This document shows, piece after piece, positions 56,407-64,000 of a stretch of DNA of 64,000 bases. Numbering within the stretch: the stretch's first letter is position 1; every line of letters begins with the position of its first letter. Under the pieces are notes generated by a model. That model ran no database searches and was not told the DNA's origin. It saw only the letters and a list, made by a program, of their open reading frames with translations. Source of the stretch: Eutreptiella sp. 'Long Island Sound 2002' (Eukaryota; Protista; Euglenida); NCBI GenBank assembly GCA_964036045.1, contig OZ038378.1, forward strand, positions 150,536,001 to 150,600,000, given 5' to 3'. The position numbers were made by a program, and so were the translations under genes.

Positions 56407-57209
56407 GTGCAGACCATTGCAAGACGCATTTGAACGGTCACGTTCCGGTTCGAAGGGACTGGCTGGGGTTCTCGCAAGAAACCCCTTCCGCGGGGGCAGC
56501 CAAGGCAGGCCCCCCCCCCCCCAGTGTCATGCCTGAAACACGGGCACGGCGTCGGGGTTCAGCGCGGCGGCAACTGCAGACATACCACCGGCGAAGACTG
56601 GAAGGTCAGGACTCAGGAAGGGGTCCCGCTGAACGGGGGGGGGGGGGGGGGAAGCGGTGAGGGGTGGGCCGGTGGAGCGCTGTGCAACTAAATGCACATC
56701 GAGCGTGCAAGCGACCACTGGAACGGGGCGTCCAGATCTTCCGATCCCCCGGGCTAAAGTAGGGCTGGCGGGATTTCCATTGCCACACCGGACGTCTGCG
56801 AAGCGAAAGTGCTCAAGGCAGTTATCAACTACACACCCGCATGACCTGCCCCTACACTTGTCCAGCCTAAGTCATCTCCGACGTTTCCTGGCATTCCGAC
56901 AAACCCCAACCGCAAATGTAGTAGAACACCGGCACCGCCGGATGCCTGTCCAGCATCCTGCTTGGATGGTACCATACATGTTTGTGAAAGATGGGCCGCA
57001 AACCCTCGGAGGCTAAGTGTGTTGGAGGAGGGAGAGGGGGGGGGTGGTGACTTGTTTTGGAGTAACAGGGGATGGACATGCAAAAGTAAACCAGGGAGAC
57101 CAGAGGAGTATCTCTCGGTCAGGGCATGCGCATGTGCTTCCCGATGAAGGCACCGGACCAGCAACACGCGGTCTGTGTGTCTGGGTGCGGCGGGGGCAGG
57201 GGGCGGCAC

Positions 57210-57922
57210 TTAACTCATCATGTGAACCCCCGAGGGCAACAGAACCTCCCGCAAATGCACTATGAAAAGCTGCCCCGCATGACCCAGAGTGCTCACCACC
57301 CGGAGCTTGACCCCCGGGTACAGCAGCACCTCCTCCTCCGCCGCGTCAAACACCGAATACTTCGTGATGTCCACCGCCGAATGGACCTCGATGTTGAAGA
57401 GGGTGCCGGGGCCCTCGTACCCCAGAAAGCCGCCCCGCGTCAGGGCCTCCAGGCTCTTTGTTGCCGACGAGAACGCCCACCAGTAGACCTCCTTGTCCTT
57501 GGGGTACTGCGCCCGCAGGTCCAGCCCCTTGACCCCGCGCCACACGGTCCCCGTGAACTTGGGCAACTTGCCCCTGGCGTCATGCATCAGCTTCAGGTAC
57601 GGCAAAAAGGGCTGCAGGGCCTGCCGGCGCTGATCCCGGAGCAGCTGGTTGAGCCGCGCGTAGAGCGGGCTCTCCATCGTGTACAGGACCAGGCTCCCGG
57701 CCTCATCGCCGTCCAGCCCGTGGGGGTCCCCTGCTTCCGCCACTTCGGCGCCCCTCTCAGTCGCGACGAACGCGTAGTGGACCATCTCGTCCAGGCCCAT
57801 GGCCGCCACCGCATCCATCAGCGGGACCTTGGGGAGCTTGGCCAGCCCCGTGATGGGGCTCAGCATCTTCAGTGGTCTGCGTTCACGTCCGCAAACCGCA
57901 CGGGCTGCTGCTGCGGATCCGC
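57210..57922 (-). CDS. Terminal exon of the WD40-coiled-coil-ART gene: NAD+-dependent mono-ADP-ribosyltransferase domain (R-S-E clade)
   Basis: LYTMESPLYARLNQLLR, VWRG (R), WWAFSSAT (S) and AEEEVLL (ExE). Acceptor CTCTCCCAG|GC is phase 1; stop TAA at 57210-57212. Confidence 0.92.
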
Positions 57923-57937
57923 CTGGGAGAGTCAGGC

Positions 57938-57954
57938 CCACACACACACACACA

Positions 57955-57999
<45 letters not shown>

Positions 58000-58192
58000 G
58001 ACGCAAAGCGACCAAATCGCGGCACAGCCGAAGCAACGCAGGCACTGCTCGTCAGTAGATTGTCGTCAGGCCGCTGACATTCAAAGAAAACTCATGACCA
58101 TCGGCGACAAGGCGCCTTTCTGCAGGAAACAGGCGCACAGCCGCAGCCCCGAACTCCTGAACACACACACGCGCACACGCACACGCGCGCGT

Positions 58193-58234
<42 letters not shown>

Positions 58235-58400
58235 GATGCGGAAACACACACACACTTAGTGAAGGGAACAAGAACCAACAGATAACCAATGCAGATACAA
58301 ATGCACCGGGAGGCACTGTGGGTACAAGTCTCTGGCATCCTCATTAGAGGAGCAAAAATGTTGGCGCTCAGACACACACACACACACACACACACACACT
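57938..58400. repeat. Intronic (CA)n and (CT)n microsatellites
   Basis: (CA)n(CT)n at 57938-57995; (CA)n tracts at ~58160-58256 and ~58372-58398. Confidence 0.95.
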
Positions 58401-58737
58401 TTGTGAGAGAAACCAACGAACCGACGACCAATGTGGACGGGCACAGGCAGGCAGTCACAAGGCCCTGGCTTCAAAACACCTCATCGGGCCAACAAAACAG
58501 GATCTGTGGGGTCCACAACAACACGCATCCCGTCCGGCACATGGCAGCACCATGTGCTGCTTGCTCACCGCATGCAACTCCAAACCTCCGAACTATGAGC
58601 GTGGGGCGGACGGTTATCAGGATCCTCGGCAGCGGGTTCTTGGCCCGGCATGCCCACAACGGGTGAGATGCGATGCTGCTCTGCCAAGGCCACGAGGTGC
58701 ATACACTTGGAGTGCATGGAGCTATGACTCCGCGCAC

Positions 58738-58915
58738 CAGCGAAATTCGAAGACCTCTGAGCCTTCAACTTCTCCTGATTCCAATAATCGGCGTCCCGTC
58801 GGTATTGCGGAAGCTGTTCTGCAAAATGACGACCTTGATCCTGCGCCTCCTGCTCCGCTTCAGCAGCAGCGACTTGCAGCCGTTCCCGGAGGGCATGCTC
58901 CAGCTCCTGGCGTTC
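58738..58915 (-). CDS. WD40-CC-ART gene, coiled-coil exon (178 nt, phase 0-1)
   Basis: Acceptor CCTTGTGGCAG|GAA; encodes ERQELEHALRERLQVAAAEAEQEAQ...; donor G|GTGCGC. Confidence 0.75.
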
Positions 58916-59536
58916 CTGCCACAAGGACACCAACGGTCGAGGGAAAGGATTGGCAGGGACGTGTGGGTGTAGCACGGCTCGAAGTGACAGTGCCAGGGAA
59001 GCCGACGTGCAGTCCGAATCGTCCGCTGACACATCGTCAGGGGACGAACTGAGGGATGATCTGTTGCACTTGTGAGTCTCGGTGGGTGGGACGGCGCAGG
59101 CTGTGCTGCTCCATCGCGGTGGTCGGCGGGAGGCGTACGCCCCCACCCCCCGCGGACACAGCGGCCCCGTGCTGCGCCGGACTGCACTGCCGGGCTCCAC
59201 ACGGATGCCGGTCCAGAGAAATGGGGACACATGAGGCCCGGCAGCGCTGCCGGCAGCAGCCGGACTGTTCATATCCGGATATCCGCGCAGGAATGCACGC
59301 ATCGCACCCCCCGAGGGAGAGGCAAACGGACAACAGAGGCAGCCCGGAGGGAGGGAGAGAGAGCGCAAGGTCAATGGAACCGGGAAACTGTCGTGATTCC
59401 GCGCAGAACGAACGGCAGCAAAAACAGGCGATCAGAGGCTCTTTGGCTTTTGGGGGGGGGGGGGGGACTCCAGAACACCGCAACGAATGCATGCATCTGC
59501 CCACCCACGCACACGCGCCACGCATCCCGTGAGCAC

Positions 59537-60010
59537 CTGCAATGCCTCCTGAGCTTTCGCGGCGGCGGCCTGGCACCCCTGCCGCAGTCGCCCATAGACC
59601 TCCTCCTCCCGTTGCTGGTCCTTGTCCGTGTCCTCCAACTCCGCCATCCTCCCGCGGCACGCCGCGGCCTCTGCGTTGGCCTCCCTCAGCATTGCCTCCA
59701 GATCGGCCACGCGGGCCTCGACGCACTCCAGACGAGCTCGCGTCTCCGTGGAGTCCAGGGCGGTGGCCGCCCGCTGCTGCTGGCATTCCAATCGCGATCG
59801 TGCCGCGCGCGCGCTCTGCTGCTGCGCGGTGGCGACCAGCCCTTGCATGGCCTCGACGCCCTCGGCTCCGGCCCGCAGCATTGCCTCGACGCCCGGTGCT
59901 GCGTCGCGTGCCGCATCAATGCACTGCACGCGCAAATCAGCCGCCGCCACCACGAAGTCCAGGAGCGACATATCCTCGTCGGCGCGCGCCTTGGCAATGC
60001 GTGACACAGC
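59537..60010 (-). CDS. WD40-CC-ART gene, coiled-coil exon (474 nt, phase 0-0)
   Basis: Acceptor CATCAG|GCT; encodes AVSRIAKARADEDMSLLDFVVAAADL...AKAQEALQ; donor CAG|GTGCTC; high GC3. Confidence 0.8.
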
Positions 60011-60489
60011 CTGATGATGCATGAGCGGGGGGCGCACAGGTTTGGGTGGCGCGACACGGAACTGCCGCCACCAGCACAGCACGCCCCCCCGTGTGACAGT
60101 CCGTCGGGTGGCTGTTTCTTTACGGGGCCCCGGACAGTCGCCCGTTCTTCGCTTCGCATGTTGCGTCGGGTCGCTGCGTTCTGTCGGCCGCTGCGGCCGG
60201 TGCTCCTGCTGGTGCTCCCCCCGATGCTGTCTGGTGCCATGGAGGTGGCCCAGGGCGACAGGCATGAGAGGCGGCGTGAGAGGCATGGGGGGGGGGGGGG
60301 GGGATGGGAGGAAGAGGCCATGTTGGGGTACGGGCTGCGGAATGGGATGGGGTTTCTCGGGACTGGAACTCACACACAACCGATCGCAGCCGACAAGTAA
60401 ATTGATAAAAGAGGCGGCAATGTGGGGGTTCCAGTGACGCACGCAGACGGGGTGCGGGGGTGCTGAGCACGGGTGCGAGGGTGGCGCAC

Positions 60490-60701
60490 CTCCGTGAGGC
60501 GACTGTGCAGCTGGTCGCGTGCGCGCGAGGCTGCGGTGTCGAACGTGTTGTACTCCGACCGCAGCGCACGCGTTCTCGCCTGAAACTCATCGAATTCCGC
60601 GGAGACGGCCGGGGCATCCACCGCGGCCAGCGTGGCTTCCTCCATCGGATCCATCAGCAGCGGATCGGTGCGAATGCCAGCCCACAATCTCCGAATCGAC
60701 T
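60490..60701 (-). CDS. WD40-CC-ART gene exon (212 nt, phase 1-0)
   Basis: Acceptor TTCTGTCCAG|AG; encodes ..DPMEEATLAAVDAPAVSAEFDEFQARTRALRSEY..SRLTE; donor GAG|GTGCGC. Confidence 0.72.
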
Positions 60702-61439
60702 CTGGACAGAATGCGCAGCCTCGACAAAGGCGACCCCCCCCCCCCCCGAGCGTCATCGCTTTGTTGAGGATCGCTACGAAGGCTACGTGGGTGTGCTGGT
60801 TGGTATTTCCGGACAAACGGGCATGCGCGCGGATGGTGGGCGGGTTGTCCGCCCCACGGGTTGGTACAAAGGGGGCGGGTCGAACCATCACATGTTGGGG
60901 GGGGGGGGGGGGGGGGGTCGTCCCATCCGTGCAAAACGGGCGAGAAGCAGGCGTCTGGCACTGGCGCTGCCACGGCACGAACGGCGTGCCCGCTTCCCAG
61001 GAAACGCCCCTGAACGGAAAATCGCTGCCCCCGATCCCTGGCTGCCGCCCACTCGTTGCTGCGTTGCCCTGGCCGCCTCGTCATTGTGGGTGGCCCCCCA
61101 AAGGCACCAGCCATGCATCGCTGGAGCCCAGGCGGCGGTGCCCGGCCGAAACAGCAACCGGACCAGACCCGCTGGACACGGCAACGCAGCGGTGGATGGG
61201 GTATTCAGGCACCGCCCCGACGACACGTGCCAGGCACGGCATCGCAAAGCCCCCGCCCATCGCGGCGTGGGCCCAACGGCACAGCGGCGGCGTTTGCCCG
61301 GGCGAGGCCCCGTCGTGTCGCATTGGCGCGGTCGTAAAACAAAAAAGGGCAAACGGCCTTCAGTTTTGGGGACGCCGGGCACACGGGATGGCGGTGGAGT
61401 GTGCGGTCGCGTGCACTCGAGCACGACGAGAACACGCAC

Positions 61440-61487
61440 CTGCCGTGGCCTTCTCCGCCGCCCCTTCCTCAGCGGCCTTCGTCTCGC
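61440..61487 (-). CDS. WD40-CC-ART gene, 48-nt microexon (phase 1-1)
   Basis: Acceptor GTGCAG|GC; encodes ETKAAEEGAAEKATA; donor CAG|GTGCGT; frame-preserving. Confidence 0.6.
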
Positions 61488-61712
61488 CTGCACGACACGG
61501 GGGCGGCGGGTGTGGGTGCGCTTCCTCGTGTGCAATGTGCAGCTGCACGTCGTGCTCTGCCGTGCGGCGTAGTGATGTTGATCAGCCGCCGGGCCTGTGC
61601 CTGCCTGCGGTGCGGCATTCCGCAGGACGGCCCTGCGCAGGCACGAGTGGCGACATACACTCCTCGAGACCGGGCAGGCCACGTACGCGCGCCAGCGTAT
61701 ATGCAGACATAC

Positions 61713-61838
61713 CCGATGCGGAGTCCCAGATCCGGACCGTGTTGTCAAACGATGCGGACACGATGTAGTCCCCGTTGGGCGCGATGGCGACCGCCAGGAC
61801 GTGGTCTGAATGGCCTTGCAGAGTGCGGCGCAGTTGAC
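61713..61838 (-). CDS. WD40-CC-ART gene exon encoding one WD40 repeat (126 nt, phase 1-1); upstream exons not in the window
   Basis: Acceptor CTTCCACAG|GT; encodes QLRRTLQGHSDHVLAVAIAPNGDYIVSASFDNTVRIWDSAS (GH...WD); donor G|GTATGT. Confidence 0.88.
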
Positions 61839-62145
61839 CTGTGGAAGAGGTGTGTTGACGGCGGGCAAGCGGAGGGGGGTGCGTGGGGGGCCAGGGACAG
61901 GGACAGGGACAGGGACAGACCCCGCGGGGGCGCAGGCATTGGGGGGGAGGGGGTGGCGTTCGGCAATGGTTGGATCGAGGCGCGCCCCACGCCCACCTCC
62001 GCCCCGGCGCGCACGCGCAGACATACACAGACACGCACACGCGCACACTGCCAGACACGCCGCCTTGTTATTGAGCCCCTCCCTGATCAAACTTGTTTGG
62101 GACCCCCCCCCTGGCGCCCGGCCCCCGGCGCCCTTTTCAGTGCCC

Positions 62146-64000
62146 GCCCTCCCTATTCGAATTTGTTAGGCAGCCCCCCCTCCCTAGTCAAATTTGTTAG
62201 GTACCCCCCCACCCTATTCAAATTTGTTAGGTACCCCCCCCCCCTCCCTATTTAAAATTTGTTAGGTCCCCCCCCCTCCCTATTTAAATTGGTTAGGTAC
62301 CCCCCCCTCCCTATTTAAATTTGTCAGGTACCCCCCCCCTCCCTATTTAAATTTGTTAGGTACCCCCCCCCTCCCTATTTAAATTTGTCAGGTACCCCCC
62401 CCCTCCCTATTCAAATTTGTTAGGTACCCCCCCCTCCCTATTTAATTTTGTTAGGTACCCCCCCTCCCTATTCAAATTTGTTAGGTACCCCCCCCTCCCT
62501 ATTTAATTTTGTTAGGTACCCCCCCTCCCTATTCAAATTTGTTAGGTACCCCCCCCTCCCTATTCAAATTTGTCAGGTACCCCCCCCTCCCTATTTAATT
62601 TGTCAGGTACCCCCCCCTCCCTATTTAAATTTGTTGGGTGCCCCCCCTCCCTATTTAAATTTGTTAGGTAACCCCCCCTCCCTATTCAAAATTTGTTAGG
62701 TACCCCCCCCCTCCCTATTTAAATTTGTTAGGTACCCCCCCCCTCCCTATTTAAATTTGTTAGGTACCCCCCCGCTCCCTATTTAAATTTGTTAGCTACC
62801 CCCCCCTCCCTATTTAAATTTGTCAGGTACCCCCCCCCTCCCTATTCAAATTTGTTAGGTACCCCCCCCTCCCTATTTAATTTTGTTAGGTACCCCCCCT
62901 CCCTATTCAAATTTGTTAGGTACCCCCCCCTCCCTATTTAATTTTGTTAGGTACCCCCCCTCCCTATTCAAATTTGTTAGGTACCCCCCCCTCCCTATTC
63001 AAATTTGTCAGGTACCCCCCCCTCCCTATTTAATTTGTCAGGTACCCCCCCCTCCCTATTTAAATTTGTTGGGTGCCCCCCCTCCCTATTTAAATTTGTT
63101 AGGTAACCCCCCCTCCCTATTCAAAATTTGTTAGGTACCCCCCCCCTCCCTATTTAAATTTGTTAGGTACCCCCCCCCTCCCTATTTAAATTTGTTAGGT
63201 ACCCCCCCGCTCCCTATTTAAATTTGTTAGCTACCCCCCCCTCCCTATTTAAATTTGTTAGGTAACCCCCCCTCCCTATTTAAATTTGTCAGGTACCCCC
63301 CCCCTCCCTATTTAAATTTGTTAGCTACCCCCCCTCCCTATTTAAATTTGTTAGGTAACCCGCCTCCCTATTTAAATTTGTCAGGTACCCCCCCCCTCCC
63401 TATTTAAATTTGTTAGACAACCCCCCATCCCTATTGAAATTTGTTAGGTAACCCCCCCTCCCTATTTAAATTTGTCAGGTACCCCCCCCCTCCCTATTCA
63501 AATTTGTTAGGTACCCCCCCCTCCCTATTTAATTTTGTTAGGTACCCCCCCCCTCCCCATTCGAATTTGTTAGGTAACCCCCCCTCCCTATTTAAATTTG
63601 TCAGGTACCCCCCCCTCCCTATTTGAATTTGTTAGGTAACCCCCCCTCCCTATTCAAATTTGTCAGGTACCCCCCCCCTCCCTATTTAAATTTGTTAGGT
63701 ATCCCCCCCTCCCTATTCAAATTTGTTAGGTAACCCCCCCTCCCTATTTATATTTGTTAGGTACCCACCCCTCCCTATTGAAATTTGTCAGGTATCCCCC
63801 CCTCCCTATTTAAATTTGTTAGGTACCCCCCCGACTCCCTATTTAAACTTGTTAGGTATCCCCCCCTCCATATTGAAATTTGTTAGGTAACCCCCCCCTC
63901 CCTATTTGAATTTGTTAGGTAAGCCCCCTCCCTATTTGAATTTGTTAGGTAACCCCCCCTCCCTATTTCAGTTTGTCAGGTACCCCCCCCTCCCTACTCA
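62146..64000. repeat. ~31-bp satellite (CCCTATTTAAATTTGTTAGGTACCCCCCCCT)n, ~60 copies, with a 435-bp higher-order duplication; runs off the window
   Basis: Direct reading. Rare variants recur exactly 435 bp apart (e.g. CCGCTCCC at 62773 and 63208), and track ORFs 62448 and 62883 are identical. Confidence 0.97.

Follow-up and report, generated by a model that had tools for sequence, protein, structure and literature searches.

In the HET-E/NWD receptors of Podospora anserina, codons 7/9 and 25/27 of the WD40 repeats are positively selected, and each of these codon pairs flanks a conserved residue and sits on the interaction face of the propeller (PMC1805685). Here we describe a gene with a related repeat pattern on the minus strand of a 64,000-nt stretch of the genome of the euglenid Eutreptiella sp. 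'Long Island Sound 2002' (G000:C1:150536001-150600000, in the following called the window; assembly of 2.28 Gb). It links a WD40 blade, a long helical region (the stalk) and a predicted ADP-ribosyltransferase (ART) domain. We consider it probable, taking the explanation as a whole, that this locus is one member of a recently amplified euglenid gene family, that the copy in the window is frameshifted, and that the WD40-stalk-ART fusion is real in its sister copies.

The initial annotation, made from the sequence without database searches, had joined six exons (E1 to E6, Table 1) into one frame of at least 582 aa. Checked by hand on the minus strand, these exons show GT-AG at every border, and both their predicted total of 1751 nt, ending at TAA 57212-57210, and the phase arithmetic are correct. 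Onto positions 56800-62100 we mapped contigs from four runs: two of culture RNA, one estuary metatranscriptome and, as the DNA run, one 2024 run without recorded type that is taken here as DNA. The locus is present in culture RNA runs, estuary metatranscriptomes and 2024 runs, and near-identical proteins occur in the MMETSP and JGI transcript sets. Because the joints 61487|61713, 60701|61440, 60010|60490 and 58915|59537 were seen in RNA runs and none of them in the DNA run, introns 1-4 are confirmed to the base. Two natural transcripts overlap along the gene: L052 carries the WD40 exon and E2-E3-E4-E5, and L044 carries E4-E5-E6. Together with the RNA joints, they place the WD40 blade, the helical region and the ART on one spliced mRNA.

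Of the fifth intron, the acceptor at 57922 was also confirmed by RNA, but the donor predicted at 58738|58737 was not. RNA contigs are unbroken through 58737 down to 58615 (records 6, 9 and 17). L044, a 1238-nt JGI metatranscriptome contig, aligns to the window at 59765-59536, 58919-58585 and 57924-57247, joining 58586 to 57922. It is the source of protein P0048, found by a HMMER search of exon 4 against 1.84 billion representatives, which covers the end of E4 and E5, continues past the predicted donor to ...HAHSSE and then leads directly into ADPQQQQPVRFADVNADH and a stop codon, so that the junction reads ...HAHSSE|ADPQQQQ.... Since the L044 alignment and P0048 both read across this junction, the true donor is 58586|58585, exon 5 measures 330 nt instead of 178 nt, and its junction to exon 6 is in phase 0, not phase 1. 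The 29 unaligned letters on RNA records 4 and 8 presumably represent 58586-58614, and the depth of the spliced path (28.9 and 45.6) appears nearly equal to that of the upstream exon (32.8 and 50.6). Two other candidates were rejected. The contig break at 58614/58615 is not a donor; it reflects the k-mer overlap ahead of the true one. The RNA joint 58510|57689 is not non-canonical splicing; a genomic copy on C1508 has the same 820-bp deletion.

With the phase-0 junction, the mRNA of the window copy reads 17 codons of exon 6 and stops at TGA 57871-57869, so the continuous 582-aa frame does not exist in this copy. The ATG of the ART follows at 57866, 2 nt past the TGA, in another frame. A one-base deletion sits 47 nt into exon 6: the copies that we call type I (L031, L032 and L033) are one base longer at 57875/57876, have one more CAG, and read ...FADVNAEPLKMLSPITG... 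straight into the ART. Homologues of other organisms conserve a motif ahead of the ART (R-[IF]-A-D-V...E-P-L) that this pre-ART stretch matches, and type I is therefore the ancestral state. The phase-1 donor at 58737 compensates for the lost base, and the same donor would throw the ART out of frame in the intact copies; the 582-aa frame arose because a wrong donor offsets the frameshift. For genome annotation, the lesson is that agreement of frame and GT-AG borders does not protect a gene model from error if the model conceals such a lesion. For the window copy, the predicted product is a WD40 domain with a helical stalk and no enzyme, and the intact ART open reading frame (ORF) behind the TGA is probably not translated.

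The one-base deletion is common to the window copy, its 100% identical twin 124 kb away (L043) and L010. An assembly error is ruled out: both culture runs have the deletion in their Illumina RNA contigs, as do L044 and an independent ENA assembly (P0059). The extra base at 57875 was found at a depth of 14/127.7 in the DNA run and in neither culture RNA run; in the estuary RNA run, a minority contig carries it (5.8/61.5), indicating some expression of the intact form. Other copies are broken differently. L034-L037 share a 37-nt deletion at the start of exon 6, which also breaks the frame, and a 4-kb insertion in intron 5; a protein of this type (P0002) has in addition lost 8 residues in frame, directly after the catalytic Arg. 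In L053 (G000:C1508:22154-22244), an 820-bp deletion has cut out the greater part of intron 5 together with 233 nt at the start of the ART exon. This copy is transcribed, as JGI contig L052 (91/91 identical), and in L052-type transcripts the frame enters the retained beginning of intron 5 and meets a stop at TGA 58567-58565.

The gene is not unique: a genome-wide paralogue search put the number of near-identical copies at 13 or more, and in the majority the link between helical region and ART is broken. In L031-L033 and L057, exon 5 and the ART exon are in frame, and no exon is interrupted in three copies; the intact copies lie at C16:19.08 Mb, C16:22.59 Mb and C10:40.21 Mb. On an ENA contig, the type I copy L057 has E2-E6 preceded by seven blade exons of 126 nt, a group of four and then, past a 4.5-kb gap, one of three. 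The fusion proposed for the locus is hence found in the intact paralogues, but not in the window copy, where the frameshift precedes the ART.

A divergent subfamily shows the same order of parts. Its protein P0054 is 100% identical to C20:24329743, within a tandem array of at least 10 copies at ~24-kb spacing. P0054 and P0067 are colinear with the window gene, with 42-54% identity in the helical part (for P0054, 42-54% in E4 and 42% in E5) and 34% in the ART; P0054 has no intron between E4, E5 and ART and has its own PF01129 match (48.3 bits). The subfamily is expressed, as seen from an MMETSP transcript and a 1951-nt JGI contig. Since it encodes stalk and ART colinearly, the link between the two is older than the split of the subfamilies. 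The C20 array (24.18-24.33 Mb and 20.47-20.52 Mb; L045-L051) lies among large ORFs with matches to DUF5906 (primase/helicase-like), so that it possibly belongs to some larger unit, either repeated or virus-like.

A retrocopy (L038:889-2290; G000:C26:3595588-3596989) consists of a spliced leader, 18 nt, an ATG, MATETHDRQQGIEKPG and seven intronless blades, followed by the C-terminal 133 ART residues in a shifted frame. As a retrocopy is made from one mRNA, a single transcript must once have held both blades and ART. L038 also provides a probable family N-terminus, a non-hydrophobic peptide of 16 residues ahead of 7 WD40 repeats. The retrocopy adjoins an ammonium-transporter exon. Its 5′ stretch of 22 nt, which matches the published spliced leader of Euglena gracilis (PMC6242988), has 4471 occurrences in the genome versus 0 for the reversed control. 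The dinoflagellate spliced leader has 0 matches there, and the organism is accordingly placed with the euglenids and not with the dinoflagellates. The motif is scattered over the chromosomes, which suggests very many leader-bearing retrocopies besides the genes for spliced-leader RNA.

E1 is the only WD40 blade inside 57210-61838, but at least 143 similar 126-nt blade exons exist in the genome, and both the intact copy L057 and the retrocopy have seven. Beyond the window, one blade exon of the same orientation is found at C1:150610908 and a group of five at C1:150634813-150636777; with E1 these might form a set of seven (1+1+5). Comparing 25 distinct blade exons, we found variation almost confined to positions 11, 12, 14, 30 and 32 of the 41 full codons, with an entropy of 2.1-3.1 bits at these five and near zero elsewhere. 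Codons 12 and 14 flank V13, codons 30 and 32 flank D31, and the two pairs are spaced 18 codons apart. We take these paired codons to be the strand-a entry and pre-Asp positions of the WD40 top face. Among the seven blades of L057, the five codons (15 nt) are 59.7% identical, the other 111 nt 99.1%, and the duplicated introns between the blades 94.6%. Because the exons are otherwise more conserved than the introns and the five codons far less, this pattern looks like what concerted evolution together with diversifying selection produces. The initial annotation had proposed that the propeller acts as a sensor, and five hypervariable codons per blade give this idea independent support. In all three RNA runs, there are contigs that have the WD40 exon and the initial 37 nt of E2 in common and then, from window position 61451, run into a different sequence, which hints at paralogues with the same propeller and another C-terminal part.

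Profile searches on the exons agreed with the domains named from the sequence, PF00400 in E1 and PF01129 in E6, the latter at 42.7 bits (cut-off 22.3). The ART carries the motifs VWRG, FSSAT and EEE, and the R-S-ExE triad read from them is conserved across 16 homologues, R110, G111 and S134 being invariant and E177 and E179 present in at least 90%. An AlphaFold 2 (AF2) model built with a homologue alignment reached a predicted local distance difference test score (pLDDT) of 90.1. Foldseek matched it with probability 1.0 to Vis, Tre1, XopAI, HopU1, ExoS/T, C3 and rat ART2.2, at template modeling scores of 0.6-0.66 and E-values of 1e-11 to 1e-8 versus Vis, Tre1, XopAI, HopU1, C3 and ART2.2; identity to the solved structures is 14-23%, and phmmer with the ART exon against PDB sequences gave no matches. 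Vis, Tre1, HopU1 and ART2.2 modify arginine, and the E-x-E motif goes with arginine specificity in the R-S-E clade. The domain is thus predicted to be an R-S-ExE mono-ADP-ribosyltransferase of the arginine type, as first proposed. Judged by eye, there is no signal peptide in the N-terminus taken from the retrocopy and no hydrophobic, glycosylphosphatidylinositol (GPI)-type tail at the C-terminus (...LPSGVHMMS), in line with the initial annotation. Elsewhere in the genome, at least 146 ART-domain matches were found, several within uninterrupted open frames of 2000-7554 codons, which suggests a large uncharacterized ART expansion with giant proteins.

Between propeller and enzyme, the middle exons matched no significant Pfam family in an exon-by-exon search. 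The AF2 single-sequence model of the natural transcript product of E3-E5 predicts helices at residues 31-81, 87-155, 159-197 and 203-290 (pLDDT 66). Outside the species, the stalk is nearly without relatives, with 10 matches among the 1.84 billion representatives. A word search with a 413-aa natural transcript product returned only same-species fragments and generic WD40 proteins, longer fusions being beyond its length range. When metagenome contigs were scanned with an exact pattern from the 5′ region of the ART, there was no match in a collection that evidently omits relevant samples, as L044 has the pattern.

The remaining features of the region are collected in Table 1. The repeat in intron 3 (60090-60215) has at least 1358 candidate copies, 93-97% identical, and is probably a short interspersed nuclear element (SINE) or a miniature inverted-repeat transposable element (MITE); it has no Rfam match, and Rfam yielded nothing in 56500-62200. 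The minisatellite upstream of E1 amounts to ~4.6 kb in total, and the further blades are found on its upstream side. PADLOC gave only one match, Cas6 at 18.9 bits, which is spurious.

Table 1 Features of the WD40-stalk-ART locus, in positions of the window (UTR, untranslated region).
Feature	Positions	Strand	Description
Exon E1	61713..61838	-	One 42-residue WD40 blade, last before the linker; PF00400 50.6 bits; RNA joint 61487|61713
Exon E2	61440..61487	-	48-nt Ala/Glu/Lys-rich linker; RNA joint on each side; 100% match in transcript L052
Exon E3	60490..60701	-	Helical region begins; RNA joints 60701|61440 and 60010|60490; 100% match in L052
Exon E4	59537..60010	-	Long helices, coiled-coil candidate; RNA joints; in L044 and L052
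Exon 5 (RNA-based)	58586..58915	-	330 nt = 110 codons, phase 0 to phase 0; donor GAG|GTTTGG at 58586|58585
Intron 5 (RNA-based)	57923..58585	-	663 nt, GT-AG, rich in (GT)n and (GA)n; RNA depth near zero over 58039-58392
Exon 6	57210..57922	-	17 codons in the incoming frame, TGA 57871-57869; ART ORF 57866-57213, TAA 57212-57210
One-base deletion versus intact paralogues (frameshift)	57875..57876	-	Alignment of copies
3′ UTR, at least 558 nt	56652..57209	-	L052 alignment reaches 56652; RNA contigs over 56800-57209
Dispersed ~125-nt repeat, SINE/MITE-like, in intron 3	60090..60215	.	DNA depth up to 1.6e5
31-bp minisatellite, intron upstream of E1	62143..63996	.	Extends 2.7 kb beyond the window end (L041:1-2758)

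From these data, the family product would comprise ~900 aa: the 16-residue N-terminus, seven WD40 blades, each from its own 126-nt exon, the linker of 16 aa, ~340 aa of helical region and the C-terminal ART. In the mechanism we propose, the top face of the propeller would bind a variable, probably non-self, ligand; the helical region would oligomerize or restrain the enzyme; and, upon ligand binding, the ART would use NAD+ to modify an arginine of a target protein, its output possibly serving as a defense or cell-fate effector. This would amount to a sensor-stalk-effector arrangement without an NTPase switch, in which the broken copies may be a reservoir of blade exons or truncated regulators. 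A more far-reaching and only tentative version of this proposal holds that these are NTPase-less receptors of euglenid immunity or allorecognition, with an exon-per-blade propeller diversified at five surface codons by concerted evolution and positive selection, a stalk and an ART as execution domain, the broken copies acting as blade reservoir or enzyme-less regulators.

Several observations weigh against the explanation as a whole. The further blades that may belong to the window copy lie 13 kb and 37-39 kb upstream. In 9 of the 12 characterized copies, the link between helical region and ART is broken by the one-base, 37-nt or 820-bp deletion or, in the retrocopy, by truncation; because the dominant RNA in culture is frameshifted, little of the fusion protein may be made. 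With 95-100% identity even across their introns, the copies are too recent to inform on selection acting on the ART. The N-terminus of the family, taken from the retrocopy only, is probable, and a helical stalk is suggested by the single-sequence fold, in which the coiled coil is a candidate only.

The alternative that survives best is that the family is mostly genomic debris, made of transcribed, decaying segmental duplicates and retrocopies, so that the fusion has no current function. The prevalence of broken links and the near-identity of the copies would fit, as would the type IV ART (P0002), with its loss of residues beside the catalytic Arg, in a genome rich in repeats and retrocopies. 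Neutral decay, however, would not leave blade exons better conserved than their introns outside five codons that are far more variable. In addition, three copies keep all exons open, and a subfamily diverged by 35-50% keeps the order of coiled coil and ART and is expressed. We therefore hold this explanation to be unlikely.

Somewhat less likely still is that the frameshifted copies are functional split versions, with a WD40-stalk protein as decoy or regulator and with re-initiation at the ATG of the ART perhaps supplying the enzyme separately. Two independent lesions, the one-base and the 37-nt deletion, bring the same TGA into frame before the same ATG, the ART ORF is still open in all frameshifted copies, and the frameshifted form dominates the RNA. 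But only two wrong frames exist, which makes the coincidence one in two, and in copies this young an open ORF means nothing. Re-initiation behind an ORF of >600 codons is, moreover, inefficient in eukaryotes.

We consider it very improbable that the region holds two genes, a WD40-helical gene ending upstream and the ART exon alone, with its own start or with spliced-leader trans-splicing at 57922. Most euglenid mRNAs are trans-spliced (PMC6242988), the ART has its own ATG at 57866, many ART homologues of 200-360 aa have other N-termini, and some transcripts, such as L052, have a stop codon in the retained beginning of intron 5. The L052 form, however, comes from the genomic copy with the 820-bp deletion. 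At 57922 we saw no leader, conservation of coding sequence in the homologues extends upstream of the Met, and the spliced path is almost as deep as the upstream exon. L044 is a single contig over E4-E5-E6.

Finally, that the window copy does encode a continuous WD40-coiled-coil-ART protein of at least 582 aa through the donor 58738|58737 joined to 57922 is the least credible alternative, for although the phases match on paper with GT-AG on both sides, and 54 further RNA joints beyond those listed would allow minor use, the RNA contigs of three runs pass straight through this donor, L044 and P0048 use 58586, the ART would be out of frame in the intact L031-L033, and the predicted frame over the first 56 nt of exon 6 destroys the homologue motif R-F/I-A-D-V...E-P-L.

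If the WD40-stalk-ART family does function as an immunity or allorecognition receptor, it would extend HET-E/NWD-like repeat diversification to a protist lineage without described cell-autonomous immune receptors, and would show such diversification without the NTPase of signal transduction ATPases with numerous domains (STAND) and with an ART as output domain. With intact, frameshifted, deleted and retro-copied members, the family would offer a natural experimental series.

The euglenid ART resembles the R-S-E mono-ARTs (PF01129) in its profile match, its R / S-x-S / E-x-E motifs and its predicted fold. Unlike the vertebrate ecto-ARTs (ARTC), it lacks a signal peptide and a GPI signal; unlike the bacterial toxins Tre1, Vis, HopU1, XopAI, C3 and ExoS/T, it is not secreted or injected; and it is fused behind a WD40 propeller and a helical stalk. 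In related protists, ART proteins that stand alone or have other fusion partners (P0004-P0028, 55-59% identical) share the module and the R-[IF]-A-D-V...E-P-L motif but differ in their N-termini, where a transmembrane segment, repeats rich in Ala and Lys or a different small domain is found; a search covering proteins of 120-381 aa showed no WD40 in these homologues. In the open literature, full-text searches turned up neither ART expansions nor WD40-ART fusions described for Euglena.

In its architecture, the family differs from HET-E/NWD in several respects, beyond having a euglenid host. Pfam detected no NACHT or NB-ARC NTPase in L052 or in the exons, and in the retrocopy the stretch from leader to ATG runs directly into the blades, while the genomic 5′ end of an intact copy was read only in part; the family therefore falls outside the definition of nucleotide-binding leucine-rich-repeat (NLR)/STAND proteins, and the comparison of the initial annotation with NLR-like systems does not hold in the strict sense. 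Sensor and effector have swapped ends, the sensor being N-terminal in the euglenid protein and the effector C-terminal; an ART takes the place of the HET domain; and every euglenid blade occupies an exon of its own, accompanied by a duplicated intron. The likeness to HET-E/HET-D/NWD lies in the 42-residue WD40 repeats of very high internal conservation, the variable codon pairs around an invariant residue with the same 18-codon spacing between pairs, the multi-copy family that includes pseudogene members, and the presence of an effector domain on the same polypeptide.

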